A stretch of DNA of 63,948 nucleotides, counting the filler, from Lenisia limosa (Eukaryota; Protista; Breviatea), in NCBI GenBank assembly GCA_001655205.1. It is 12 parts of 12 records of this genome, joined end to end, with 100 filler letters (N's around TTAATTAATTAA, not from the genome) between each part and the next. Parts side by side here need not be neighbours in the genome. Positions count along the whole stretch, not along the records: positions 45,697 to 62,014 come from LPNZ01010092.1; 11 more parts are not named here. One strand, written 5' to 3'. Shown here piece by piece: positions 45,101 through 62,227 of the stretch; position 1 is the stretch's first letter, and the number at the start of each line of letters is the position of its first letter. The position numbers and the translations under genes are program-made. The notes under the pieces are model-generated. The model saw only the letters and a list, made by a program, of their open reading frames with translations. It searched no databases and was not told the origin of the DNA.

Positions 45101-45790
45101 ATCTGAGGAAACAATACACCACCGTCATATTGTTTATGCTCACTTTTACGTTGATTTGGGCATACTTTCCTTAACCGCCCCCCCCCCCCNNNNNNNNNNN
45201 NNNNNNNNNNNNNNNNNNNNNNNNNNNNNNNNNNNNNNNNNNNNNNNNNNNNNNNNNNNNNNNNNNNNNNNNNNNNNNNNNNNNNNNNNNNNNNNNNNNN
45301 NNNNNNNNNNNNNNNNNNNNNNNNNNNNNNNNNNNNNNNNTACTCCGTATCAATTGCCTGGATAATTATTCGGTGTGGTTTATGGTATCCCTATGAATTA
45401 TTTTTTATCAAGATTGTATTTGGTGAATTTCCTTTCCCTCAAATAAAAATAAAACAAAAACAGTTGCCTAGTTTCAGAAAATTTGCTGCGTGGTTGATAG
45501 TGGAGTGGGAGGGGGGGTAAGCAAGTGGGGGTAGGTGAGCAGTGGTAAACATAAAAAAAAAGGCCCATAATCAACTCTGTTGGTTGACAACACACGNNNN
45601 NNNNNNNNNNNNNNNNNNNNNNNNNNNNNNNNNNNNNNNNTTAATTAATTAANNNNNNNNNNNNNNNNNNNNNNNNNNNNNNNNNNNNNNNNNNNNGAGG
45701 ACAGATGAACAGTAACTCAGTAACTAAAGATCACTATGCATGAAAAGGTTAATTCGTTGTTGTATTTAACACATTATTTCTAACCCCGTA

Positions 45791-46514
45791 GAGCTGGAAG
45801 AGAAGACCATGCCCTCTGGACAGGCAGTTGATGACCTCCTTGGTGAACTTGATGCGCTTGACATCAAGATTGCCCCTGATGTCGAGCTTGAGGAGGAGGA
45901 CGAAAGATGTTCGCCCAAAACCCGGCCAGTCGAAGACGACTCTCATCCAAGCCCATTTGTGTCAAGGTATGCATGTTCCCTTTGTGCAAATGGAAACCTT
46001 TGTTTTTTCTCGATTTTACTGTCGACATATAAATCATAGCAAACCCTATGTCCCCGTTAATAAATCTAGCGGCTTTGTTTTTGTCCGCAACGCTCGTTGT
46101 TTCTCCAGCATTGTCGATTGTTACTTAATACACTGTAGCGCAATTCCACTGGAAACTGAGGAGCCGAGCTCCGAGATCGGCTTTGGCCTCGATACCGCTC
46201 TTGCTGAACTTGACGACCTCAATTTGACCGAAATGCCTGGTTTGTCGGGGTCATTGTTAGATCTCATCAATTTCTTTGGAAGTGCCAAATTGTGATCTTT
46301 AAACGACTGAGATAGGGGGATTTGCCACACTTCTGAAGGAGTCACGTTTTTTTTTTTTTTCGGGTTTCTTCATGACTTTTGTAAACGTTCTCACGATTTC
46401 AGCAATGACGGAGGGCATGGAAGCAACAGTGGTGGCCCATGAAGACGACGCTGGGGGCCTCAGTGACTGTTCAGTCAAAATGAGCGATGGAGAAGAAGAC
46501 ATAGATGAGCTCTA
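45791..46514 (+). CDS. 3' exons of an acidic protein with LD-like leucine/aspartate motifs
   Basis: Phase-consistent: ELEEKTMPSGQAVDDLLGELDALDIK..SPFVS|SAIPLETEEPSSEIGFGLDTALAELDDLNLTEMP|AMTEGMEATVV..DGEEDIDEL*. Confidence 0.55.
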
Positions 46515-46608
46515 GTTTACTAAACCACTATTTAATAATGTAAAGTTTGACAAGCTATATTCTAAAAAAACCCTAGTGTACAGAAACATGAAACAAAACA
46601 TACAGCCC

Positions 46609-49600
46609 TTAGCAGCAGCAGCCACCCTTGCTATCCTAAAGCAGTTAATTCAACACACAGGCCGCTTTGTTCTGTTACTTGATGTAATGCAATGTGATTC
46701 AATTAATATTGCCAACCCACTTTCTCAAAATCATCTGGGTCAACACCATCGAGGTTGGGTGCTTCACAGAAGTTCTCAAGATCATCACTAAAATGTCAGT
46801 GCCGTGGAACTTTGAAATAGAAAAAGAAAAAGGGAAACAATTCGTGAGAATTGCATTACATTCTAATGAAGACAGGATCAATGTGGAAAATAAAATATAT
46901 TCAGAGTGGTTTTTCATAACACGTGACCCCCACCCCCCACGTCCACTCGAAGAAGTCGTTGCGGTTCATGCACTCGATCTCCCAAACTTTGCCGTCCAAA
47001 TCCTCGATCTCGAAGGTGTTTTCGTCCTGGGGGGGGGGGGGGGNNNNNNNNNNNNNNNNNNNNNAGCCCAGAATAATGTGTTTTTGCAAACTGAATATCT
47101 GAAACTCCAAACAAACAAAAAAACAAGCAATAATGAGCAACCAACGCTAAAACTAGGGGGGGGGGTGATCAATCAAAAACTTATGTGTACAAAGGAGCAA
47201 ACCGATTCGTCAGNNNNNNNNNNNNNNNNNNNNNNNNNNNNNNNNNNNNNNNNNNNNNNNNNNNNNNNNGATGAGCTTGCATGGTTCGAAGAGGGAAATC
47301 TCCTTATCACAGTCCAAGCCAGCAAACTTGTCCTGGAAGATCATACTCGAAATATTGCAATGAACAAAATGTGTGGAATATGGTGCGTTAAAAGTTAGTA
47401 TGATATTCAAGAATTCAAGTGAGTAACCACGCACCTCCTTGTTCTTCCACAGGTTGATGTGTTCGCGTTCTCCGTCAACATCCAAGAACGCCCAGTAAGT
47501 CTTCCCATTCACAATCAATTCAGACTCCTGGAGGGGACTAAATACACGCAGGAAATATTAAAGAGTTTCTTTACTAACTTGTGTCAATCTGTCGGGGAAA
47601 AGAACTTACTCACTCTGTTAAATAGGAAGCCCCCAAAATGAACCCAAAGCGAAACCAATACGCCGTAAACATAGGGTGCAAACCTGGTCGCCTGAGCGTT
47701 CCCCTCTGATCATCTTGCCTTTTCTGTCAAACCATGCCACGAACTAGAGCAGATTAATGGTGTAAATAGAAAACAACCAACACAGATAAGCCAAAACAGT
47801 TCCAACAAAATCAAAGGACCACCCCGACCTTTCTGAACATCGATGATCTCGACATTGCGTGCTTTTTGAACTCTTTCCATGAAACACTTCCATCGCCGTC
47901 CTGTGGTGATAAAAATTATTAGAAAGAGAAAAAAAAAAAAAACATGGCTTGATGAAAAGACGTCCTCAGCACGATATATATAGCAATGAGAAATAAAAAA
48001 ATAAGGTCAGCATGATGTAAACACTTACTGGGACATATCATATAGCAGCGCACATTCTATCAGATATTCCCCTCCATTCAAAAAAAAAATGATAAGTTGG
48101 ATGGGTGAGTCAAACCAAAAACTTACAAGAACCCCTCAAACCACGTCCATTTTAGCAATCATTTTCCTAAAAGAGTCAACGATTGAACACTATAGGTGTG
48201 TGTTAATATGCAAACAAAGAGATGCTCAAAATTATAATGTAATTGAAAAATAATAACACCCCCAACTTGACAGCATGAGTGATCAGTTTAGCACCAATAA
48301 TTGTGTTAATTGAGGCGAAAGCGACCTTGACAAGCTGAAGGGTGAGATCCACTTATCACCCCATTTTACATAAAACACTTGTCTGACCATATATCGTTAT
48401 CACATAAAGTGCTATTTAAAGAACTTCACTTCTGTCCGAAAAAAAGACTGAATTTCTCGAAACTTCCAAAACTATCGAGATGGTATTGTTGACGGAACCC
48501 ATCCCTTTATAGAAATGGAGCTATTCGAAACTGTCTGTAAACACTAATTGGTTCCCAACATCCCTCCTTGAAACCAACCTTTCCACCAGGCACAAGTCCG
48601 CCCGAGAAAATGGCAGTCACGCTAGAATGTTATTGTCTATACTTGATTGGCTTTAATGTTCTCTATTTTAAACAAAAAGTATGAAAACTAGAAACAGATA
48701 AATGCACACTGAAAAAGATAGACGGATTGGTTAACTTCTGTATCTGGCAGAAGGGATCGCTATCTATTGCAGATTCCAATAATTATTCTTGCTTTTTTTT
48801 TTTCACCACCCCTCGTACTAGTTGGCAATCTTCTCAGCAAGATTGACACCAGCATCAATGATACTCTTCATCATTCTTTTGAGGACATCAAGTGTCAGAT
48901 CCAAGCTTCCACAGAAGGCCTGGAAGAGCGCTGTGATGTGAGATCCAATAATGGAAATTCAGTTCAGCTAACATCATTGTATGGATATTAGGTTAATCGC
49001 AGTTCTCCCACCTTTGAGTTTGTCCACAATGTTGCCAACGGAAAGAAGAGTCAGAGCAGTGCCAAAGTATTCGAGTTTGATTGGGGCCTTGCTTCCGTCT
49101 CCTCCCACACGGAACATTTTTGAGAGAGCCTGGGGGGGGGGGGGNNNNNNNNNNNNNNNNNNNNNNNNNNNNNNNNNNNNNNNNNNNNNNNNNNNNNNNN
49201 NNNNNNGCACCTTGCGAACTTCTAAGATGAAAGCAATGTTCAAATAGAATGGAATGAAGAGACGGAGTTACAATATGTAAGTTTCAAGCCCATGCCCCCT
49301 CCCCCCCATACCTTGACCGTGGCAGGGTGGGCCAGGAAGGAGTCGCCGCCACCGAAGCTTTCTTTTGAAGCCTTGACAAGCTCGTTCTTCTTCACAGTCG
49401 TGGCCTGGTGGGGAGTGACAAGGAATTTCGATGAAGAATATTGTTGTAAAGGTGATGTGGCCTGGTGCGGGTAACTTCAAATGGCAAAGTCCACGATGTC
49501 ATTTTTGAAACAGGGGAAACTCACATTATAATAGAAGACTGCGTCAAAAGATGAAAAGATCCGAGGCAATAAGAAAGCACGGTTTATCGTCAGCAATGTG

Positions 49601-49936
49601 CGCGTCAATATTATCTACCAGTTTATCCCACATACATTGACACCACCGCCACAGCAGCAGCAACAGCACAGCGCCTTCGGGAAACAGAAGCAGCACATCA
49701 TGCTAGATTTGCCAGGGGGAGTAGATTTGTCTTGAAGTGTGGTCATCAGTGCACTGACTTCTTCAACCTTGGCTATAGGGAGTTAGAAGAGAGAGAGATC
49801 GGTCAAATTCCTTACGTGGTTTGTTCATCATCTCAGTAAAGGACGCACCATCATCTCCACCGCAACCTATATAATGTAAACGTGCTTAAACACCGCAAAA
49901 ATTACAAACAGCCCCCTTACAACAACAGCAACCCAT
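46609..49936 (-). CDS. Complete gene: N-myristoyl/poly-Cys terminus, internal Cys string, NCS/calcineurin-B-like EF-hands, PH domain, C-terminal CCC motif
   Basis: About 15 exons (one junction inside an N gap): MGCCCCCGGDD..MMCCFCFPKALCCCCCCGGGVN..LEYFGTALTLLSVGNIVDKLKALFQAF..KKMIAKMDVDGDGSVSWKEF..ESELIVNGKTYWAFLD..INLWKNKEDK..EISLFEPCKLI..ENTFEIEDLDGKVWEIECMNRNDFFEWTDDLENFC..DFEKDSKGGCCC*. ATG at 49936, stop ends at 46609. Confidence 0.8.
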
Positions 49937-50224
49937 TGTTTTGAAATTTGTTGAGAAGACTGTTCTACTTTATTGTTGGAATTGAATTGTTCTATATAGC
50001 ACAAGTACTTCAATAGAAGAAAGAGAGAGTGAAACCTGAGTGAAACAGACCCAAATTTTCCATTAAAATGTGGGGGTTGAACAATACCGATACACCTTTT
50101 AATACATCCAGGCTACTTTGAAGCCCCTTTCTGAAAGTAATAGAGTGCTGCTAAATTGTTGTAGCTAACAGTAGTTTGAGAAAAGTATAAGGGAAGCTGG
50201 ACACATTTTCCTTCACTTGTTACC

Positions 50225-52406
50225 ATGCTTAGAGCAGCCTTCTCAAGGAGCAGTGTCTTTAAAGGTATAGGGTTTATTATAGTAATATGTTTAAGAGAGG
50301 GTCTTCTTGAGTACGTCTCTTCCATACCTCCCAAATGAGCGTTTTTTGAGCCGTCCGTCTGCATAATCATCATAGTTACATTCACAGGCCTTCTGCCCTC
50401 TGTTAGGCGCTTTGCCAGTAGTTCGGCAAAGGTCAACCTCGGAGGCTTCGTCAACAATGCCGCACCTAAACCATCAACGGTGGGTTAGTTTCCGTAAAAA
50501 CTGCTGCCAGATGTGCTGATTACGTTTTTGCTCTCTTTATATTTCAGTTAATATTTGACTCTGGCTTTTTAAAATTATTTTGGAAGTAACAAAAGGGCAA
50601 AAGAGTGGAATGAATAGGCTCGAAACCCTTGATGCACCATCAATCTGTGCTACTTAGTCTTTTTGTTCACCAAGGAACACACAAAGCTGACTTCTCAGGT
50701 CAGTGCTGAGGAGCTGGCAGCGGCCAAGAAGTTTGGTTGGATCACTTTCGGCCTCATATCGGCCGCGGCGTTTGCTGGTGTCACATGTGGGCATGGAGGT
50801 GTTCAATTTTTTTAGTTTTACAACATTATCTTGAATGTTTGATGTTTTGTGAGTATCCAAATCCCACATCCAGGTTTTTGTTTCTTTTTTTCATTTTTTT
50901 TCATATCTAACACCTTTAGACCAATGCAAAGGAGACTACAAAGGATGTGAGTCATCATATTATCACTGCCTGTAAATTTACTGTATCAATATTGAAGTTG
51001 ACTTTATGACTCCTTAGTTTACAAGAGCCTTCAGGATCAATACCATTCAACTATTAGAGTAGGTGGCACTTATATATAGTGTACACAACAGCACGGAATA
51101 ATGATTTGCCTGTTTTCATTTTCATTTTTTTTTTTTTTTTTTCAGCCAACATTTTGAGTATTGAGGTCTCAGTTTTGCACATTTTCCTGACCAAATAGCA
51201 ATACAGCGAGCCCAGTCGTCCCTATGCCCTCCTCCCTTCTATGCAGGTTTGTTTGGAACAAATGGGTGGTTTGGTCGAAGTCGTTACTATAGTAATAATG
51301 GTCAGGTATGTGTGTGTTTGTATGTGTGTCGGTAATCTCCCATTTCCATAGCCATTTACCTCTAAACCCCTCAATGCGATAAAAAAAAACTATTTGAGGA
51401 GCCTTACTCTCAAGATCCCCCCTGGCCAGAAGATGCCTTTGACTCTTGTTCTTGACCTCAATGAAACTCTTGTCCACACCACATGGAGCGTAGGATGGAA
51501 TCCGCCATTCTGTGGTCATTTCTTAATAGGGAATGTGGTACCACTACAGTTTATTTCATGAAATGTTGTGTACTTGCAGCGGTTTCGTGTAGTATATCAT
51601 ATGAGAGTAGTCGACTTTGAAACATCCACCTTATGCTGTCAAAGTATCATATTTTAGCGTGAACGTGGATACCAGACAAAGAAAAGACCTGGTGTTGACT
51701 ACTTCCTGGCCTATCTCTCACAGTTTTACGAGCTGGTCATTTTCACGTCCAACCAAGCCGCGGTACGAGTTCTTTTGCAGCATATTCTTTTTTACATACC
51801 GTTTATCCTTGTTTTTGTTTTTTAATGTAGAGTTTCATTCATGGTGATTTTAAGCTGACAACTGTAGCAAGCACAAAAGATTATTGAGACTCTTGACCCC
51901 AATCGCTACGTTCACTACCATCTGTTCAGAGATTCAACATGCTACGTCAAAAGCAAACATGTCAAGGTGGGTTTCTTTGTTTTCTTCTCTCACCATTATT
52001 GCAATGTGCCTCTGACCATTTAGGACCTCAACCATCTCAACAGAGACTTGAGGAAGGTGATGATTGTCCATAACGACAAGAACTCTCTTGTTTCCCCCAA
52101 AGAAAACATCCTTCCGATTCCAAGGTGAGTAGTGACATCCATGTAGCCCTATCTCTCAATTTAGCATTCATACATACAGAGTATATTTATACACTCAGCA
52201 GAATCATATCCAACAATGCAAACGTCTTTCTATTTTGGGTGAGTATATTATCGTGATGAGACATTGTCAAAAAGTAATACAACTTATATAATGAAGGGGG
52301 AAAGGCGGCCACATCGATTAGTACTTAATCATGGACCTTTAACCCTGTAGATGGACTGGTCAGCCTGGCGATAATGAACTTGTTAACCATATGCCTTTCC
52401 TTGAAA
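50225..52406 (+). CDS. TIM50: Mitochondrial import inner membrane translocase subunit TIM50; last exon(s) not found
   Basis: Presequence [26 protein letters not shown]; TM segment [16 protein letters not shown]; QYSEP..LLP; FCP1-like domain [82 protein letters not shown]. Confidence 0.85.
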
Positions 52407-53201
52407 GTAAGCTGGTACTATTTCGTTATTCAGATATTGTATGTATTATTCTAGGAGGTGTAGCTAGTTTTTGTTCGATTTCAATGTTTGCTGTATCTGT
52501 GTTTGTTTTGTTTTGTTTTGTTTTGTTTTGTGCTTTGTGTTTGCCCAACCAACCCTTTTTTTTGTACCATTACTACTTTTGCTCAGCATCAGTATGAGTA
52601 TGGTTTAGAATAGTTTGCTTGATACCATATTGCTCGTACCTGAAGAGATTCTTTTCTGCCTGGTCTGGTCCGCGCTCTGTCCATCCAGCTTTGATCCCCT
52701 CGGGGGTCGTATGCTTGGGGGGACGGCTCTAAGCGTTATGATTGGGTTGTGACCGTTAATAAGTCGGATTTTTTAAAAACATTTCCATTGAAGCCCGGCG
52801 TTTGGAGGGCTGGGGGGTGAAATAAAAAAGTAAATGTTAAAAAGNNNNNNNNNNTGTGGATGGAGGCAGAATCGCCGATATTAACGAGAGGTTGGTTACA
52901 CTTGGGGCTCCATGCAATTAATTGCCAAAATTGAAGTAAGACTCATTGTCATGGGAACTCCATTTTAGACACGTTAATAACAAAATTTTGTTAATTGATT
53001 TCTCCAAAAAATTTAATGCACGGAGTTGTAGATATTAATGAGGGTGGAAGGGCATTTCACGCCATAAACTCAGCATTTTCCTAACCCCCCCCCCCCCNNN
53101 NNNNNNNNNNNNNNNNNNNNNNNNNNNNNNNNNNNNNNNNNNNNNNNNNNNNNNNNNNNNNNNNNNNNNNNNNNNNNNNNNNNNNNNNNNNNNNNNNNNN
53201 N

Positions 53202-54675
53202 CTGCCAAGATCGAGGCTCTTGAAACGGCCTTGTCTATCGCGGCCGAGTCCAAAAGTCGGCAGTTCAGTTCCGTTCAGTTCATTTCTTTATTCCATCTGA
53301 AAATTACCTTCATTTATTTCGTATATTTATTTCGCATATCCGTAAATCATAATGATCCTTGAAAAGGGTATGAAACAACCTTAAACCACCTTTGTATTTG
53401 CAATTAACCCTGACAGTCAATGCGGAGGCGGAGAAGGAGAAGGCTGAGAACTCACATGAACTCACGAAACTGAAGCTGAAGGAAGCCGATCGTCAGATCC
53501 TCGAGGTAGGCTTCTTTTGAATCGTGTCCATGCTTCATGGGTCTCGAAAAGGACTGGGAAAATATCCAAGGATTTCGAAGATTTATCTACTGGCGTTGTT
53601 TCAAAACTTCCTTCACTTAGTACTTTTACGCCAAAATTCGTCATCGAAATTTCCTTAGTTTTACTCCCCCTAGCTTCTTGGCGGACAGGCCCCTGCAGAG
53701 ACCCCCCCTCAATTCGCTCCGGAACCAGTGGGGGGTGTCCAATTGAGCCGTTTCTGTCACTTGATAGTTCAATGCTGTTCTTTCAAGCTCCTTTCTCTTC
53801 CCATGTCAATGGAAAGGCTGTACGGGAGGGGATTTTCGGCTTAGGAGCAATATATGAGCTAAATCAAAATCCTGACATTTCACCCCGAAAGCTAATTTGC
53901 ACACCATTTTCAGTTATATGAAATGGGGGAGGGGGTGACGACGTGGCTTTATCGCATGATGATATGAGATTATCTGACATCGAAGACGGTTGAAGAGGAG
54001 GAAGCTCCAAGCACTCCTGTCACCCCTACCCCTGCTTCCGCGAGCCCCATCACGCCAAATCGCTCTTCTCAGGACATACAACGACGCGACTCTGTGTCAT
54101 CCTGTGGGGGGATTTCTCATCTTTATGTTGTCTTCTTTCCGCTTACCACGATCTTTCTTTATTTTATTGATATCTCTGCACCACTATCCAAATCTCATCA
54201 CCCATCCAGAGCACACAAACATACCATATTCCTGACCCCCCCAGTGCAAAGCAGCACCGACGACCTGAAGCACGACGTCATCGAGGCCAAAGAGAGGGAA
54301 AAGAGGCTCAAGGAGGAGCTCAAGCGCGCTCAGAAGGAGACCAAGGTGGGGAAGGAGACCAAGGTGGGAGTGGAGACCAAGGTGGGAGTGGAGACCAAGG
54401 TGGAGAAGGAGACCAAGGTGGAGAAGGAGACCAAGGTGGTGGGGAATAGCCTGGGCTGTTATTCAAATGATGGGTGGTTTTATTGAACAACTTGCTAAGA
54501 TTTGGATGTCAGGAAATGTGATGCCAGTGCAGTCCTGCTTTGAGTGTCTGAGTCCAAAATCGTTGTCCCAAGCTTATAACTCACCATACAGGAGGTTGAA
54601 ACGCTTGCCAAAAAGGCCCAAAAAGACGACAAGAAGCGTCTGAAAGAGAGGAGACGAAATAGTGTGGCGTATTAG
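53202..54675 (+). CDS. 3' exons of a coiled-coil protein
   Basis: AKIEALETALSIAAESK..|VNAEAEKEKAENSHELTKLKLKEADRQILE|LLGGQAPAETPPQ..|..VQSSTDDLKHDVIEAKEREKRLKEELKRAQKETK|EVETLAKKAQKDDKKRLKERRRNSVAY*. Confidence 0.6.
54334..54439 (+). repeat. 18-bp tandem array (6 units) spanning a splice donor
   Basis: Core GAGACCAAG|GTGG repeated six times in frame (ETKV units). Confidence 0.9.
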
Positions 54676-55019
54676 GTGCTCGGCGGTTTTTCTTGGTTAT
54701 TGGTGTATATTATCTTTGTAATTTATCAGCTATTTACCCTCTTACCAAGGCAAGAGGGCTTAATGACACTCGTTTCGAGTAATTACTGGTTGTTAGCAAC
54801 ACAAATGTACTTACAATAAAAACTTGGGGTTAAACAATCAACAACATTACAGAATAAATACCTCAAAAACCAATTCAGAGTCCAAAATCATAATGGTACA
54901 AGTTTACATTTCACCTTACAACACTAATATACACATGCTTTCTGGGGCGTGGGAGCCTGAAAGATGAGTTTAGAAAAGCTGAACTCAATGATGAGCTAAC
55001 AAAGCCCCCTCCGCCAACC

Positions 55020-58000
55020 TAAATTACTTCACCAAACTGCCCTTTTTGCCGAACCCAGCAGGCCGCGAAAACCCCGAGTTTGCCCTCGATGCACTCGAAC
55101 TGGAGGTCATATTGTGTAGTGAAAGATGAAACATTAACAAATCTCGGGAACAAAAGAATAATGTTGAAGGGTAATTGGCATTTTATTGTATTAAAGCAGG
55201 TTTTTTGTGCGCCTTTTTTTTTAAATAGTTTAAACCAAATTGAATGCATAATCCTGCCCTCAATGCCTACCGAATGCTCGTTCTGCCGCTTACGGGCTTG
55301 GGACTCAGCGGCGGCGGCTGAAGCTGCGGGGGTGAATGAAGTAGACACGGTACAACTAGGGCTTCACTTTGGTTCGAAAAAGATCGGTAAAATATCGATA
55401 GTTTTCGAGGATTTATCGAAAAATTCAGTCTTGTTTCGAACCGAAGTGAAACCTCAAGGTACAACTCACACCAATATGTCCATTTCACTCGCTCCACCAC
55501 GAGACTTACTCCCTCCCACTTTGGCTAGAAGCACTGAGGGGTCTGGGACATTGCCAAAGGACGTGTTTGAAGCAGTACGTCTCCGTCTAACGGGATCAAA
55601 AGGGGTGATTTAATATAGCACACACAAAAAATAAATATACTATATCATATATCATATATATACGATATGCATATTTTTGAATAATAAGGCAAAAACTATA
55701 AAAACGGCCCCTGGTACCCCTGGGAGCCCGGGGACGGCGGTCTGGAGTTTGTTCTTGACGGTGCGCGTGAACTTGCGCGGGAGGCGCTTTTTCTACACAA
55801 TGCATTAAATGAACGTCGTGACAGAAATGATTTACCATACCCTTTTGGCCCAATTCATCCCAAAAGCCAATATTCATAAACTGGATATATCCCAAATAAA
55901 CTCTCAATATGTATAATCATATAGGGCTTCGGCCAGGTACTACCTTATTATTTATTCCTCATTGCAATCATTATATCATATAGTATATCATATATAATTA
56001 TATCCCAACGCCCACTTCTTGGCGTTGGCGGTAGCCAGAGCGGCTGCGGCCATATTGTCCATAGTCATCGCCATTGAAGCCCGGCGTTTGGAGGGCTGGG
56101 GGGTGAAATAAAAAAGTAAATGTTAAAAAGAATGGAGAGTAAGCAGTCCAAGGATGGGAGAGTAAGCAGTCAAGGATGGGTGTTAATACACACGTGAGGA
56201 ACAATCCAAATGTTAATAATTAAAAAGATGCTACCCCCCCCCCCACAATTGGGAGTCGCAATGAGTCGAACTGCGGACCGCCCAGGGTGTCCGAGTTTGC
56301 CCGGGTGCGCGATCGGAGGGGCGCACCCTGGGGTGTACCTGGCTCCACAACTGCATCATCAGGATAGTCAAAAGAGAAGCAGACATTTATGGAGCTGGGC
56401 TAACGCAAACAATACATATGAATTTGTACCCCTTCTCGGAAGCATGACAAACGTAGGGATCTTCAGCCTTAAGAAGAAATATGGCAATAAAATGGTAGCA
56501 ATTGGGGATATCATAAAAACCAGCGTATTGACCCTATCAAGCTGGTATCTGATCCTTTCCAAGTAGAAACTCCCAACCAACCAATTGCCCTGAGCGCTGG
56601 GGATTGNNNNNNNNNNNNNNNNNNNNNNNNNNNNNNNNNNNNNNNNNNNNNNNNNNNNNNNNNNNNNNNNNNNNNNNNNNNNNNNNNNNNNNNNNNNNNN
56701 NNNNTAGGAAATCAGAAGAATCAATACATCACCCCTAATAGTCTACATCACCCCACTTTTCACTTGGCTCTCTTCTTGAAGAGTGTGTCTAGACTAGTCA
56801 AACTTGGAAGATATTTACATTTTATTGCACAGTTTTCATTGTTCTATACTAACTGTTTTCACCTACAAAGAAGAGAGGATTGTGGTAGACGACGGTGATG
56901 ACATGAGTGGAGGGGACGAGGGGTAGACATTTGATAAGACTTGCGGCAATCTATGAGACAGGTCAGATAATATCGATATGGGTCAGACAGAATCAACATA
57001 TCATCAATATAAGGATCATTAAGGAGTTCATCTTTAATGGAACATAGTCCCGCATAAGACAACTCTCTTATCCTAAAATAGCGACAAACAGGAACCAAAC
57101 GTACTTCGCAATCAGCTGCTTTGCCTCAGCAAGTTGGCTCATTAATCTGGCCAATTCCGCCTAAATTGTGAGTCAGCATAAATGTCAAGATATTTCAAAC
57201 CCCATCCCATCGTATATTGCCATTTAAACCTCAATCATATTTGTTTGTTATAGACCCCCCCCCCCACGGGCCCCGGGTTCCTTCTGACGAGCACGGCGGC
57301 GCTGACAACACTCTCCATTTTGGTGGACAGGGGGTGGACCGATCGCGAGATCTGGTCTGTCCAATCCCTCTGGTTGACCCCTATGATGTAACTAATGCAA
57401 CGTGACAATTTGGGTTTCGTAATGAAGACTTGATACCCGTAATCCACTAACACACAATTTGACTATCTGTTTATGGATGTGCCTTGTTCAATTTCGGCCA
57501 TCCAAAAGATACATATATATCATATAATATATTTTTTCTCACCATCATATTCTCAATATCATGATCCTTGTCATCTTTCACTCAACTCACGTTCGGGTCC
57601 CGGGATTTCAGTGACAATCGGTTCAATTGGACTAGTGGCAGTTTTGGCTGCTTGCGGTAGTGGTGGGGATTTAATACAACTTGGAGGTGTCACAATGGAA
57701 AATTTTTGAAACAACAACCAAAATCAACTCTAATGCAGCTTGTGTGTGAGGAGCATATCGATATGAAATCGCGGAAAGGCATTAATGTGTATAATAAGTG
57801 TATGAAAATAACTCAAAAGAAATACCGCAATGCACTCCCCCCACGGTTTAGGCTCCAAGTCAGCCGCCGTAAGTTGACGGTCCGTACTGGGGGTGCTGGG
57901 GGCACTGGGTTGCGGCGATCTATGATCTACGGGTTCTTGCCATTGGGGGATGGGGACGTTGGGAGATTGGGGTTCTAGGGAGATTATTATAACACTTCTG

Positions 58001-58600
58001 CAATATCAAAGCGTCCTGCAAATCACCATAAACTCACCATCATCGTCCATAGTCGGTTCGAATATCAACGGTCCTCCTGATGCCTCCAGTATGGACGCTC
58101 GAAGATTCAGCTCCGTTGCATCCGCTTCGCCGAGGGGACGCGGATACTCTTCTTCCTGGGGTGGGGTGAAAGCGTTTATTGTGAAGATGGGCGATTCTTT
58201 TGGCTTGGCAAAAGCCTCATTTCAAAATAAATTGAGGGTAATATTCTCCCACATTATGAGTAGAAGACGATTTTGATGATATGACAGGTTAATTGAAAAA
58301 GAAATTACTCTCAAGCAACGATTATCCAAGCCGCATACATAGGGTCTCTTGGCCACCTCATCCCGAAAAGACTGCATGAGCTCTTTCTCATAGAATGGCA
58401 CTGAAGTGATAAGTACAATGTCTTCAGGAAAGAAGGGCTTATTGCATCCCGGGAACCAATGTTCAAAATACACCGCTCCATAATAATAACAGGAATAATA
58501 TTGGTATAATATTTATTGGGTCCCGATGTACCGGGAGGCACGGCGTCAAGGTCAATAGTGGCTTTTCTAGTTTTGGGGGTCTCTGTTGGGATGTTTTCTT
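55020..58600 (-). CDS. Long multi-exon gene (possibly two), mostly disordered, product unknown
   Basis: Exons include HWFPGCNKPFFPEDIVLITSVPFYEKELMQSFRDEVAKRPY, ..LNLRASILEASGGPLIFEPTMDDD, AELARLMSQLAEAKQLIA, PSKRRASMAMTMDNMAAAALAT and LQPPPLSPKPVSGRTSIR. Phases not fully resolved. Confidence 0.45.
55359..55453. mobile_element. MITE family B copy
   Basis: TA|GGGCTTCACTTTGGTTCGAAAA...TTTCGAACCGAAGTGAAACC. Confidence 0.8.
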
Positions 58601-59964
58601 CTTTTAGTGAATTGTAATGCAAGAAGTAGCAAAAAAGAAAAGTAATTGCATTCAATATTAAGTGTTGTTTTTTTGCATGTGAAGCTTAAAAAAAATATGA
58701 GCTTCACATGCAAAAAAACGATAAAAAATGATTTTCAAATCCAAAAAACGTTCTTTTGAAAAAACACATTTCCGCTAACCAGAGTAGCCGTGAGTCATGT
58801 TCATTCGTTTGGCCAGACGGAAGTAGTAATCTCTAAGCCTAGCGTTATCAGATCAATTCTTTTGGTTCTAAATAAATACAGGGCCATTTTCGCGTTTTGA
58901 TCATAATCCTAGCAATGACACAGTTCAAGAATGGCAACATTTGAGTTATTTCTCCGCAAACTCGGGTCTAAGCATTTGCCATTCGCTTGAAAGGCGCTCG
59001 AATGCACGGGCTCTTTCGTGGGCTAGGTGAATGGGCGGCAGCGGCACGTGGTGGGTGTGCTGGGGGGTTAGTATTGGATATGCGTTATTAATAGCTTTGT
59101 AGGATTATTCAGGGATTTGAAGGGACATAGCTGTATCGAAATGTGATACCGATACCCCCGAGATTAACCATCATATTATCTTCAGTTTCGACAAGAAGTC
59201 GTTCTCATAGAGCTAAATTGTTCAACATTCTGAAAAAGCTGATTCCTTATTCCTCTTGCTTTTTATTATCGAACATTATGATGATACAAATAAGTTGACT
59301 CTGTAATGCCAATAATTATAGTACTCGATCATATGTCCAGATTAAAACCTGATAAATATTTGCGATCCACACACCCACCCTTTCGCAGAACACCATAAAC
59401 GGTGAAATCACCATGTTCAGTCCTTGATGCTGTATTCTGTGTTGATAATCATTTATTAAAAAAAGAGTTTGCTCAATCCAATAAATTTAAAAACAACATA
59501 CATACCTTATTTTATTACCTCTCTAGTGAGACAGTTGAGTGAAAAGGGCTCATTGTACCCTGTAACTATGACTCTGTGAAGTGGTGGTCAGACAGTGAAG
59601 TACTTGTTTCCGATTCCAAAACTCTGATATTTTATATTGTTCTTTATGTCGTTTGAGGAAGTGAGGTGCGGAGAGAGTTAGTTGGTTTGCCAAAATGAAT
59701 ATACAGTCAAGGAACCAAGGACATCCATGTACCAAAAAAGTACCTTTTAAGCTGTTTTGATTTCCAGCGCTCGGAACGCGTCAATAATTATCTTATTATT
59801 GCAACACGTTAAAAATTGATAAATATAATCAGAGAATAGCAGCTGAGTTTGCCAACAGTTTCGAAATTTCCTCTTAGCGGCCCCTGTAACCAGCCCACTC
59901 CACCCTTTCAGTGCTGTTTCGATTGAATAGTTATCAACGGATGTTATCGTAGAGAAGAGCGAGA

Positions 59965-61910
59965 ATGTCACAGCCTCCAGGGGGCAGGGCCTCCGTCTTA
60001 TCCCCTTAGTATGTTGGATGATCTTGGATGTCTGTGCAAGCTGTCGGTATTGACTTACTTTTGTTTTTCTTCATGGTGAAAGTCGAAGTGCTTTTTTTTT
60101 AGTTCCCTTATGTTATTCAACAAACACTTCTTTTCTTTCGCCCTTCTCACAGTCACCTTATCACGCAGTCACTGCCATTTTACCCATTTCTTCTCGCAAA
60201 TCAAAGCTTCCCTCACCCACCCTTTCGCCTAATTGCCTCACCCATTCAGCCACTATTTTGGCGTTCAGACGGGAGTCAGTCGGAACATCCTTGTCTTAGA
60301 CAGCACTCAAGTTGCCATTCCCGTAAGCTTTTGGGGGGTCTTGGAGAAAGGCTGTATTTTTTGGTTCTGGATTTAAGTTTCCGTTTGTACCCTTCATATG
60401 TTTGGTCAACAGAGTTGATTTATTTCTGTTTCTTAAATTGGTTGATTCTGGGTTTGGTCAATCTCACACCCCACCTCCCAATGGGATGCGGTGCTGTAAG
60501 CGACTGGTCTGGGCTTTGTTTGTTTTGTTGTTGTTAACCCTTGTGTGTTGTCAGCCAACAGAGTTGAGTTGGTTTTTTTTTTGTTTCATAAATTTTCAAT
60601 ATTACGNNNNNNNNNNNNNNNNNNNNNNNNNNNNNNNNNNNNNNNNNNNNNNNNNNNNNNNNNNNNNNNNNNNNNNNNNNNNNNNNNNNNNNNNNNAAAT
60701 GCTGTTTACTGCTCCGCCGCCGCGCCCTGTTACCATCACCGCCCTCGCCGTGTCCCCAAATAAAAAGGTGTGTATTTTTGGACAAGATATTTCTACAACC
60801 TTTCACATAATATGCGCACGGAAGACAGTAAAAATCAAGGAAAACGTGAGGAAAAATAAATTCATAGGAATCTCATAAAACAAATTACCATACTTACGTG
60901 CGCCTTTTGTTTTCATTAAAGGTATTATTATTAGGTGTTATTATATTACCCGTAAGAAACCAAGGCTTCAACCCCCACGTTTAATATTTTAGTATTTGGC
61001 TATCGCTGAGGTTACCCCGGATCAGCCATCCCAGGTGAGTGGTTTTCTAGAGGAAAAAGAGCTTCCATTCGTCTAATATAATTGTAATTAATGAGGTGTG
61101 AGGTTGAAAGGCAATGAAAAACCATTGTGACATTCACTTCCGCTAGACACAACCGAACTTATAAAGAAATATCATATATCATAAACTATAATATGTATCA
61201 TCTATCTATCTCATGATCATATGATATAATGCCCACCACTTTAGGTTGGAATTGTTTACATTCCATCCCTGAAACGCGTCCGGACTGTTACAACTGATAC
61301 CCCTGACCGCATCACTCATCTTGCCTTTTCTGGTATGTCCAATCACCCATCTTGCTTTACCCTTTGCAAGAATCGAGTATTTTTCGATAATATATCGATA
61401 TCACAGGAAAGCCCCCCCCCCCNNNNNNNNNNNNNNNNNNNNNNNNNNNNNNNNNNNNNNNNNNNNNNNNNNNNNNNNNNNNNNNNNNNNNNNNNNNNNN
61501 NNNNNNNNCATTAAACTCTCAGTTTTTTTAAAAACATATTGCACCACACCCATGTACTTGTCACTTATAATGGACCCCTAGGTGACTCAAGGTATCTGGC
61601 TACACAATCTACAGACGCCCACTTTACGCTGCTGTATTGGCTATGGGACAAGAACCGCGTGGGTTGGGTGAAATCCAAGATAGTCAGTTATCATCGAAGC
61701 ACTACTGTTCAGTCAACCTTTTGTTCATTCTAATAACCCCATCTTAAGCTAATAACCCATCTAAATAACCATTTTAACGGATTTATGTCACCATCAAAAC
61801 CTATCTAAAGCCATAATAATCCCGCTGCAGGTTGTGGCCCATCATCGTGTCCAAATGGAGGTTTCAGGTCTTGCTACCAACCCCGATGATCATTCCGAGC
61901 TGGTTGTATG
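59965..61910 (+). CDS. CFAP57: CFAP57/WDR65 (FAP57)-like WD40 protein, N-terminal part
   Basis: Spliced: MSQPPGGRASVLSPYHYFGVQTGVSRNILVLDSTQVAIP..ITALAVSPNKKYLAIAE..VGIVYIPSLKRVRTV..ITHLAFSGDSRYLATQS..FTLLYWLWDKNRVVAH... This parallels the FAP57 N-terminus as recalled (FG...V.NN...D...V..P / ALxVSxNK+xLAVAE / LxFSGDxKxLxxQ / LxxWxWxK). Exons at ~62755-62832, ~63390-63416 and ~63710-63790 may continue it beyond the spacer. Confidence 0.72.
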
Positions 61911-62227
61911 GTGAGGGAAGTGTGAAGTTATGTTGTATGGTGAGGGAAGCTGTGTGACACTATTTTTATTGTATCCATAACTCCTTCGTTTCATCCCCCC
62001 CCCCCCTTTCCCTCNNNNNNNNNNNNNNNNNNNNNNNNNNNNNNNNNNNNNNNNNNNNTTAATTAATTAANNNNNNNNNNNNNNNNNNNNNNNNNNNNNN
62101 NNNNNNNNNNNNNNGTCCGTGTCATCACTGAAAGCCCAAGATCTCTACACACCCTCAAACCGTCCGTTGCCACCACTATCATCAACCTTCCCATTCCTTT
62201 CAGGTTGGGGAGATGGGGGCAAAGATT

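Follow-up and report, generated by a model that had tools for sequence, protein, structure and literature searches.

Gene structure and transcript evidence

The window analyzed here is a joined stretch of 63,948 nucleotides (filler included) from Lenisia limosa, and it carries on its minus strand a gene that is real, transcribed, and spliced as 16 exons. The reading frame opens with an ATG at 49936-49934 and closes with a TAA at 46611-46609; the limits given in an earlier note on this DNA (46609-49936) are exactly this ATG-to-TAA span, according to the RNA contig and its translation. A single polyA RNA contig (X1, 1254 nt) aligns as 16 exons with 15 joints, and GT..AG ends are present at all 15 joints after the shifts permitted by the alignment tool. 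The RNA evidence for the gene comes throughout from one study, to which both the polyA RNA-seq run (X1) and a DNA-like run (X2) belong. The parts of the gene and its assembly gaps are as follows.

Exon 1, 49921..50011, minus strand: 75 nt of 5'UTR and 16 coding bases, encoding M-G-C-C-C plus base 1 of the codon for the following Cys; RNA joint 49864/49919 (+2)
Exon 2 (51 nt), 49816..49866, minus strand: completes MGCCCCC (aa 1-7, to 49862), then an acidic/polar linker; RNA contig
Exon 3 (137 nt), 49636..49772, minus strand: preceded by a 43-nt intron, holds the Cys string; RNA contig
Internal Cys string CCFCFPKALCCCCCC (aa 49-63), 49651..49695, minus strand: 9 Cys in 15 residues, TGC and TGT codons
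Exon 4 (93 nt), 49312..49404, minus strand: RNA contig
Exons 5-10 (49129-49012, 48930-48819, 48621-48579, 48334-48267, 48166-48142, and 47900-47829), 47829..49129, minus strand: EF-hand region, aa 100-245, net charge about +13
Canonical EF loop DVDGDGSVSWKE (aa 220-231), 47871..48147, minus strand: divided by intron 9 into 48147-48142 and 47900-47871; predicted from Pfam and calmodulin EF4 alignments
Exons 11-15 (47743-47684, 47527-47435, 47332-47203, 47026-46941, and 46787-46721), 46721..47743, minus strand: aa 246-374, acidic, net charge about -21, possibly PH-like
Exon 16, coding part (27 nt), 46609..46635, minus strand: DSKGGCCC and TAA, with Cys380-382 at 46620-46612 and the stop at 46611-46609; RNA joint 46634/46720 (+1), 27 letters on the short side
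Assembly gap, 49145..49206, intron 4: adjoins a poly-C tract just before the AG acceptor; spanned by an X2 DNA contig with 18 letters fewer than the N run
Assembly gap, 47044..47064, intron 13: adjoins a poly-C tract just before the AG acceptor; spanned by an X2 DNA contig with 26 letters more than the N run
Assembly gap, 47214..47269, inside exon 13: 56 N stand for 7 real letters (plus strand GGGGGCA)

All three assembly gaps within the gene (two intronic, one exonic) were resolved. Those in introns, at 47044-47064 and 49145-49206, are absent from the RNA by splicing and are each crossed by a single X2 DNA contig, and the length of the N run is wrong in both. The letters missing from exon 13 agree between the RNA contig X1 and the DNA contig X2, and their restoration gives an exon of 81 nt with the frame kept.

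The earlier note had proposed a spliced model with two odd termini and an internal Cys string, and the RNA contig, together with the identity of the product to an existing protein, bears it out. At the start, the contig confirms the first exon with its 16 coding nucleotides and the MGCCCCC beginning; the 5'UTR contains no ATG and has an in-frame TAA, and intron 1 (54 nt) interrupts the fourth Cys codon. At the other end, it confirms the 27-nt last exon (46635-46609), which is spliced to exon 15 and encodes DSKGGCCC-stop, thus giving the GGCCC-stop end. This exon is present in the only transcript form seen (RNA contig; Trinity ORF) and contributes only 8 residues, and without the splice the frame would stop 6 codons on (VGWQY-stop). 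The stop codon is covered by the RNA contig and is directly followed by an Illumina adapter; hence, no 3'UTR is visible. Joining and translating the exons gives a product of 382 aa identical to protein P0001, an independently assembled Trinity ORF of Lenisia limosa in EukProt. P0001 was retrieved with a stop-free reference of exon 12, intron 12, and exon 13, and the later protein searches used P0001. Its motifs are MGCCCCCGG (aa 1-9), CCFCFPKALCCCCCC (aa 49-63), DVDGDGSVSWKE (aa 220-231), and GGCCC (aa 378-382). Within the 16-kb piece that holds the gene, no paralogue was found, and Rfam gave no match on it.

Cysteine clusters

The protein has 23 Cys among its 382 residues, and 17 of them fall within three runs. 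These runs are neither a product of chance nor a simple DNA repeat. When the protein was shuffled, a run of five Cys appeared in 42 of 200,000 shuffles, and the probability of having Cys at positions 3-7 together with Cys in all of the last three residues is about 5e-11 given the composition. The possibility of a trinucleotide-repeat artifact was rejected, as the codons of the longer runs are a mixture of TGC and TGT and Tandem Repeats Finder reported no array at the Cys runs; the terminal run consists of three TGC.

At the N-terminus, MGCCCCC matches the PROSITE N-myristoylation pattern G-{EDRKHPFYW}-x(2)-[STAGCN]-{P} and is a putative myristoylation signal. Ser or Thr is preferred at position 6 of this signal, and Cys, as found here, is permitted by the pattern. 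The segment at aa 47-65 has a mean Kyte-Doolittle hydropathy of about 1.6 (hand calculation), close to the usual threshold. The last four residues are G-C-C-C, without the Cys fourth from the end that defines a CaaX box, and the GGCCC end agrees with the C-terminal CC/CXC/CCX motif of Rab GGTase substrates.

EF-hand region and C-terminal domain

One canonical, predicted Ca2+-binding EF-hand loop closes a basic EF-hand-like region. Pfam places EF-hand_1 (PF00036; 27.0 bits versus a cut-off of 25.4) and EF-hand_7 (PF13499; 30.3 versus 30) at aa 202-235, and DVDGDGSVSWKE at aa 220-231 conforms to the 12-residue loop D-x-D-x-D-G-x-[ILV]-x-x-x-E. Calmodulin EF4 aligns to the EF-hand with E values of about 1e-6 to 1e-5, and EF3-EF4 of both calmodulin and calcineurin B align to aa 183-239 (calcineurin B to aa 183-233). 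When Pfam was run on the exons one at a time, which are uninformative at such short lengths, only half an EF-hand was recovered (E 0.01), because intron 9 divides the EF loop; in NCBIfam, the sole match, to an EF loop, stayed below threshold. Upstream, the NOX5 EF domain (E 0.039) and frequenin-2 (E 0.34, 14.6 bits) align weakly and colinearly to aa 99-185, and a direct reading of the sequence shows three loops there without the Ca2+-ligand pattern. A disabled EF1 with a Cys-Pro-x-Gly motif is a trait of the NCS family; this motif was not found, and the sole Cys-Pro of P0001 belongs to CPPD (aa 318-321), outside the EF region. Similarity to the NCS family is not significant, as the best match is the one to frequenin-2 and no NCS-specific Pfam entry matches. 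Thus, of the NCS/calcineurin-B-like EF-hands described in the earlier note, the single canonical EF-hand stands by Pfam and a weak, colinear NCS/NOX5-like look persists upstream.

C-terminal to the EF region lies a strongly acidic domain. Two low-confidence AlphaFold models, and these alone, suggest that it is beta-rich. Single-sequence AlphaFold2 without an alignment gave a mean pLDDT of 37.3 for the whole protein and 38.8 for aa 244-372, so low that the models are unusable, and these same models draw about seven strands at aa 267-341. The PH fold is a seven-stranded beta-sandwich with a C-terminal capping helix that bears a conserved Trp; toward its end, the Lenisia domain has a Trp within the stretch FFEWTDDLENF. 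Among the language-model neighbors of aa 240-375, all the top named ones are PH families, with scores of 0.75-0.81 that have the value of a lead only. No Pfam match to a PH-clan profile was obtained up to E 10, either with the whole protein or with aa 240-382, and a PDB sequence search returned nothing relevant for PH. The PH-like domain claimed previously was not recovered by Pfam or PDB, and PH families appear only as lead-level language-model neighbors; a PH-like fold for this domain is putative.

Search for relatives

Queries with the whole protein, with aa 240-382, and with aa 70-245 against 5.8 billion proteins retrieved only the protein itself and one sub-threshold EF-hand match (E 0.66). 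A phmmer search against 1.84 billion representatives gave, besides the protein itself, only two repeat proteins, both spurious, and no relative was found in metagenome contigs. These protein searches and the metagenome scan agree with the earlier view that the combination comes from no described family. With no detectable relatives in the libraries searched, this gene of the breviate Lenisia limosa would be lineage-restricted.

Proposed membrane anchoring and alternative explanations

In calflagin, an EF-hand protein, Gly2 is myristoylated and Cys3 is palmitoylated (PMC6678300). Hydrophobic Cys-rich segments of the yeast CYSTM proteins are palmitoylated membrane anchors and not transmembrane helices (PMC10840359), and the terminal Cys-Cys of Yck2, dually palmitoylated by Akr1, is its sole membrane anchor (PMC3145546). 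Our preferred reading, held with middling confidence, is that the Lenisia protein is a multiply acylated EF-hand protein, constitutively bound to one membrane rather than tethering two, with lipidation predicted at each anchor. It would sit on the cytosolic membrane face, held by lipids and not by a transmembrane segment, with Gly2 N-myristoylated and the Cys of aa 3-7, 49-63, and 380-382 S-acylated by DHHC palmitoyl-transferases. All three anchor regions, at the N-terminus, in the linker, and at the very end of the chain, would be fastened to the same bilayer, so that the EF-hand and C-terminal (probably PH-like) domains would lie permanently flat on the membrane. Ca2+ at the single good loop would alter conformation or partner binding on the membrane, with no switch from cytosol to membrane; palmitoylated calflagins are documented precedents for this, as are plant CBLs and KChIPs. 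The flat-lying part of this reading fits poorly with the acidity of the C-terminal domain, which an acidic membrane surface would repel.

The CCC end would be a palmitoylation site of the Yck2/CK1-gamma kind and not one of Rab-type prenylation. The earlier note had assigned it to Rab-type geranylgeranylation and had proposed a Ca2+-regulated tether or clamp, in which myristate and palmitate would hold the N-terminus in one membrane and two geranylgeranyl groups, added to CCC by Rab GGTase, would hold the other end in a different one. The anchor regions are indeed at opposite chain ends, and CC, CXC, and CCX ends are sequences modified by Rab GGTase; however, this enzyme does not read the C-terminal peptide alone but acts only on substrates presented by REP, which first binds the Rab GTPase domain (PMC9141697). 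Since this domain must be recognized and Pfam finds no Ras/Rab domain here, Rab-type prenylation is unlikely, and the palmitoylation of the terminal CC of the non-Rab Yck2 (PMC3145546) is a better precedent. Furthermore, nothing points to separate target membranes for the two ends, and a chain of 382 residues that includes two folded domains would reach a short distance only; we consider such a tether very unlikely. An integral membrane protein, with the Cys string (aa 47-67) as a transmembrane helix or re-entrant hairpin, seems to us just as improbable. The near-threshold hydropathy of aa 47-65 speaks for it, and similar CYSTM segments were initially annotated as transmembrane, but the latter were shown not to be so (PMC10840359). 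A Pro-Lys pair also lies in the middle of the segment, and a single pass would place the N-terminal acylation signal opposite the EF-hand and the C-terminal Cys.

The Cys clusters might otherwise serve metal binding or redox buffering (metallothionein-like or as a metal chaperone) in a soluble protein with which this anaerobe would bind Ca2+ and metals, a distinctly doubtful option that the abundance and clustering of Cys would favor. Metal sites have C-x-C or C-x-x-C spacing, unlike the runs found here, which are unbroken, have Phe, Leu, Met, and Gly as neighbors, and in one case come right after Met-Gly, with the look of acylation sites. Some CYSTM family members are linked to metal resistance, but CYSTM proteins are themselves palmitoylated (PMC10840359). 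A point in favor of the metal or redox role is that Lenisia limosa lives without oxygen (habitat, PMC12453579), so that free thiols would be stable. Somewhat less remote, though still unlikely, is a protein that relies on the N-terminal MGC signal alone, CCC and part of the string having arisen recently in this lineage and contributing little or nothing to function. No orthologue that could show conservation was found in the libraries searched, and the last exon supplies just those 8 residues. On the other side, that exon is used in the only transcript form seen, and the TGC/TGT mixture of the two longer runs argues against recent repeat expansion, while the terminal run is too short for such a judgment.

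If all three clusters are acylated, the multiply anchored single-membrane reading describes an unusual small soluble-type protein, fastened N-terminally, in the linker, and at the extreme C-terminus around a Ca2+-binding domain. It would then be a compact natural system for studying how multi-point lipid anchoring constrains a membrane sensor, in a deep-branching relative of animals and fungi for which hardly any cell biology is available. More speculatively, and with only a slim chance in our estimation, lipid fastening at three points including both chain ends could let the single Ca2+ site control the arrangement of the EF-hand and PH-like domains between the anchors. As a breviate-specific staple or clamp, the protein would in this case shape or bridge membranes, for instance at a contact site or at the membrane of the flagellum or of filopodia; such Ca2+-controlled membrane organization would be a mode undescribed for any EF-hand family. 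The scope of these considerations is a single orphan gene of one species, known from sequence and transcript. They suggest that, where a non-Rab protein ends in CC or CCC, the motif be read as a palmitoylation candidate and not as a prenylation signal.

Comparison with known systems

Rab GTPases with CC or CXC ends have the terminal Cys motif in common with the Lenisia protein, which lacks the GTPase domain; thus, REP recognition and Rab GGTase action are not expected. The non-Rab proteins Yck1/Yck2 of yeast and CK1-gamma likewise have C-terminal Cys clusters. Compared with these, the Lenisia protein lacks a kinase domain and the C-terminal peptide of 10 residues that is conserved there and includes an important Phe-Phe, and it carries three Cys after Gly-Gly. 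The N-terminal module of phospholipase C also brings PH and EF-hand together, and a PLC-beta PH_14/EF cluster is among the language-model neighbors (0.79-0.80, lead level only); in the Lenisia protein, the order is reversed (EF, then PH-like), and the catalytic X/Y and C2 domains are absent.

A dense internal Cys run in a hydrophobic context is shared with CSP-alpha/DNAJC5 and SNAP-25, whose Cys clusters are heavily palmitoylated and anchor a soluble protein to membranes. Unlike these, the Lenisia protein has neither a J domain (no DnaJ Pfam match) nor a SNARE motif, and its string lies in the N-terminal linker. In the CYSTM/CYSPD proteins, a short hydrophobic segment rich in Cys has a transmembrane look but serves as an anchor through palmitoylation (PMC10840359); these proteins are small (60-150 aa), carry the segment as a C-terminal module, and show no homology to the Lenisia protein by Pfam. 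With the N-acylated EF-hand sensors (trypanosome calflagin/FCaBP, plant CBL1, and animal NCS proteins and KChIPs), the common elements are an EF-hand domain and an N-terminal Met-Gly-Cys, although the Lenisia protein has no significant sequence relationship to them (E 0.34 to frequenin) and one canonical loop only. Those families have none of its other features, namely the five consecutive Cys after Gly2, the Cys string, the additional domain at the C-terminus, and the Cys3 end.

Gene structure and transcript

The piece at 45697-62014 carries the Cys-rich EF-hand gene on its minus strand, which was read directly. Its start (49936-49921) reads ATG-GGT-TGC-TGT-TGT-T and is followed by GTAAGG, while its end (46635-46609) consists of an AG acceptor and then GAT AGC AAG GGT GGC TGC TGC TGC TAA. 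Two sequencing runs from one study were used: X1, a polyA RNA-seq run, contained 23% of the sampled words, and X2, a DNA-like run, contained 98%; since X2 is a possible source of the assembly, its DNA reads are no independent evidence. One X1 RNA contig of 1,254 nt spans the gene in 16 blocks, and a base-by-base check revealed that, after allowed shifts, all 15 joints are CT..AC on the plus strand, that is, GT..AG on the gene strand. The introns measure 43 to 244 nt, and the first two are as follows.

49867-49920, minus strand: intron 1, 54 nt, interrupting the N-terminal run within its fourth Cys codon
49773-49815, minus strand: intron 2, 43 nt

The RNA contig begins 75 nt upstream of the ATG, with a leader containing an in-frame TAA and no other ATG. 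It crosses the TAA at 46611-46609 but shows none of the 3'UTR, as Illumina adapter follows. The earlier note had proposed a spliced start with a 16-base coding first exon and a 27-base last exon ending in CCC-stop, and had called for an RNA check of both; the two exons are present in the X1 transcript, and the observation as a whole is confirmed in full. Skipping the last splice would stop the frame six codons later (VGWQY-stop), and the sole transcript form seen, in one RNA study, uses that splice. The coding sequence of 1,149 nt yields 382 aa, and this RNA-guided model is identical over its full length to P0001, the 382-aa library record of the product, which a cluster look-up gave as EukProt EP01086_Lenisia_limosa_P012577, a complete Trinity ORF. 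This ORF probably rests on RNA of the same study and hence brings in another assembler without adding an independent data set.

Assembly gaps within the gene

47044-47064: in intron 13, absent from the spliced RNA and spanned by a single DNA contig; 21 N stand for about 47 letters (+26)
49145-49206: in intron 4, likewise removed from the RNA by splicing, with a single DNA contig running across it; 62 N stand for 44 letters (-18)
47214-47269: in exon 13; the 56 N replace only 7 real letters, read alike by DNA and RNA contigs

With these 7 letters exon 13 is 81 nt long, and the frame continues ...KLI-CPP-DES.... The two intronic gaps each adjoin a long poly-C run immediately before the AG acceptor, and these serve the two introns as polypyrimidine tracts. 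Gaps of the piece coincide with homopolymer G/C runs (47026-47064, 47213-47270, 49129-49206, and also 53080-53118), and their N counts are unreliable. The summed depth of DNA contigs rises from ~30 to 300-2000 in bins at ~47097-47133, 47978-48007, 48427-48460, and 49424-49452, located in introns 13, 9, 7, and 3, respectively. Many DNA contigs end or join at these places, including joints between 49443 and 47097. This pattern points to short high-copy repeats that several introns here have in common with many other genomic sites.

Neighboring features

A divergent plus-strand gene at 50226-52020 starts only ~215 nt away from where the RNA contig has its 5' end. It has a presequence-like start and a hydrophobic segment, and colinear matches to the NIF/FCP1-like phosphatase domain PF03031 fall in three exons (best E value, 2.8e-8); its predicted product looks like a TIM50-like mitochondrial import subunit. 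The convergent plus-strand neighbor at 45770-46515 has no Pfam match and ends in an acidic C-terminus (...SDGEEDIDEL-stop at 46515). Its stop lies 93 nt from that of the Cys-rich gene with RNA-run depth present there, and thus the 3' ends nearly abut. Farther along, an 18-nt tandem repeat on the plus strand (54333-54439, ~6 copies, 92% match) reads as KETKVG/KETKVE-type repeats in one open frame downstream of a Lys/Glu-rich stretch, and may be a repeat-containing coding exon. A 65-nt direct repeat at 52780-52844 and 56066-56130 is 97% identical over copies 3.3 kb apart.

Protein architecture and relatives

Terminal, linker and Cys-string segments of the 382-aa product

aa 1-7: N-terminal run, MGCCCCC, matching the PROSITE N-myristoylation pattern
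aa 8-48: polar linker
aa 49-63: internal Cys string, CCFCFPKALCCCCCC
end of chain: C-terminus, DSKGGCCC

Three runs hold 17 of the 23 Cys residues. Runs of five Cys arose in 42 of 200,000 shuffles of the protein, and even with so Cys-rich a composition, Cys at every one of positions 3-7 and at each of the last three has a probability of ~5e-11. An origin as a repeat artifact is ruled out by the mixture of TGC and TGT codons in the runs and by the lack of a tandem array there in TRF. The runs are neither chance nor artifact.

The region at aa 69-245 is basic (net charge of about +13) and contains one EF-hand above the curated Pfam cut-offs, whose canonical loop, DVDGDGSVSWKE, occupies aa 220-231. 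Residues 183-239 align with calmodulin EF3-EF4 and with calcineurin B, and aa 99-185 align weakly but colinearly with the NOX5 EF domain (E value, 0.039) and frequenin-2 (E value, 0.34), where the loops matching other EF-hands are without Ca2+ ligands. The EF-hand of the earlier note is real judging from its sequence match, and Ca2+ binding is predicted; its NCS/calcineurin-B-like label is reasonable as a resemblance, short of demonstrated family membership.

The C-terminal domain (aa 246-374) is strongly acidic, with 35 D/E versus 14 K/R. Pfam and PDB sequence searches found no PH domain in the protein, and AlphaFold2 without an alignment gave two poor models (mean pLDDT, 37-39) that draw aa 246-374 as a run of strands. 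The only positive sign for PH comes from the ESM Atlas feature search with aa 240-375, whose top named neighbors are all PH families, at scores (0.75-0.81) that by the tool's own rating amount to a lead. The PH-like domain of the earlier note thus survives as a lead, and a PH-like fold for aa 246-374 is somewhat favored. The domain would more likely bind a protein than acidic lipids.

No relatives emerged when the whole protein, aa 240-382, and aa 70-245 were compared with 5.8 billion proteins by word-indexed HMMER; the only matches were the protein itself and an unrelated EF-hand protein at an E value of 0.66. An exhaustive phmmer search of 1.84 billion representatives, whose query covered only 52 real residues of the stop-free exon 12-intron 12-exon 13 (47270-47527, minus strand), returned P0001 and two spurious repeat proteins. 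A metagenome contig scan gave no match, and the piece at 45697-62014 holds no paralogue. The architecture is real and without a detectable family, as the earlier note had supposed.

Putative lipidation and mechanism

In many proteins a Met-Gly-Cys start receives myristate first and palmitate afterwards, and the hydrophobic Cys-rich segment of cysteine-string protein is a palmitoylated anchor. The Met-Gly-Cys start of the EF-hand protein calflagin undergoes the same two modifications in that order (PMC6678300). In yeast CYSTM proteins, Cys-rich hydrophobic stretches once taken for transmembrane helices likewise serve as palmitoylated anchors (PMC10840359). By analogy, the MGC start would be myristoylated and then palmitoylated, and the internal Cys string would be a palmitoylated membrane anchor. 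Less likely alternatives are a transmembrane segment or hairpin formed by the string, and metal or redox binding by the Cys runs.

Rab-type geranylgeranylation of the CCC end, as claimed earlier, is unlikely because Rab geranylgeranyltransferase does not recognize the C-terminal peptide, and REP must first bind a Rab GTPase domain (PMC9141697), which Pfam does not find in this protein. Nor is the GGCCC end a CaaX box. In the non-Rab protein Yck2, terminal Cys-Cys is dually palmitoylated (PMC3145546), and palmitoylation of this kind would be the expected modification of CCC; a functionless CCC tail is a less likely alternative.

All of these modifications would occur on the cytosolic face, and the simplest picture would be a protein fastened at three points to a single membrane, against which its EF-hand region and C-terminal domain would be kept. 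Ca2+ would then act on conformation or partners and not on membrane recruitment. The whole mechanism, which we infer from established lipidation biology, is the most likely reading; a tether between two membranes is possible but unsupported by the findings here. From the earlier interpretation, the EF-hand and the architecture without a detectable family are retained, while PH is only a lead and Rab-type prenylation is unlikely.

Lenisia limosa is a breviate, an anaerobic amoeboflagellate (PMC12453579; bioRxiv 10.64898/2026.01.29.702055), and the protein represents a single orphan gene from a little-studied lineage. It is best placed with the fatty-acylated EF-hand Ca2+-binding proteins, its own acylation being presumed: it resembles calflagin in combining an EF-hand with a Met-Gly-Cys start (PMC6678300), and its CCC end compares with the terminal Cys-Cys of the non-Rab protein Yck2 (PMC3145546).
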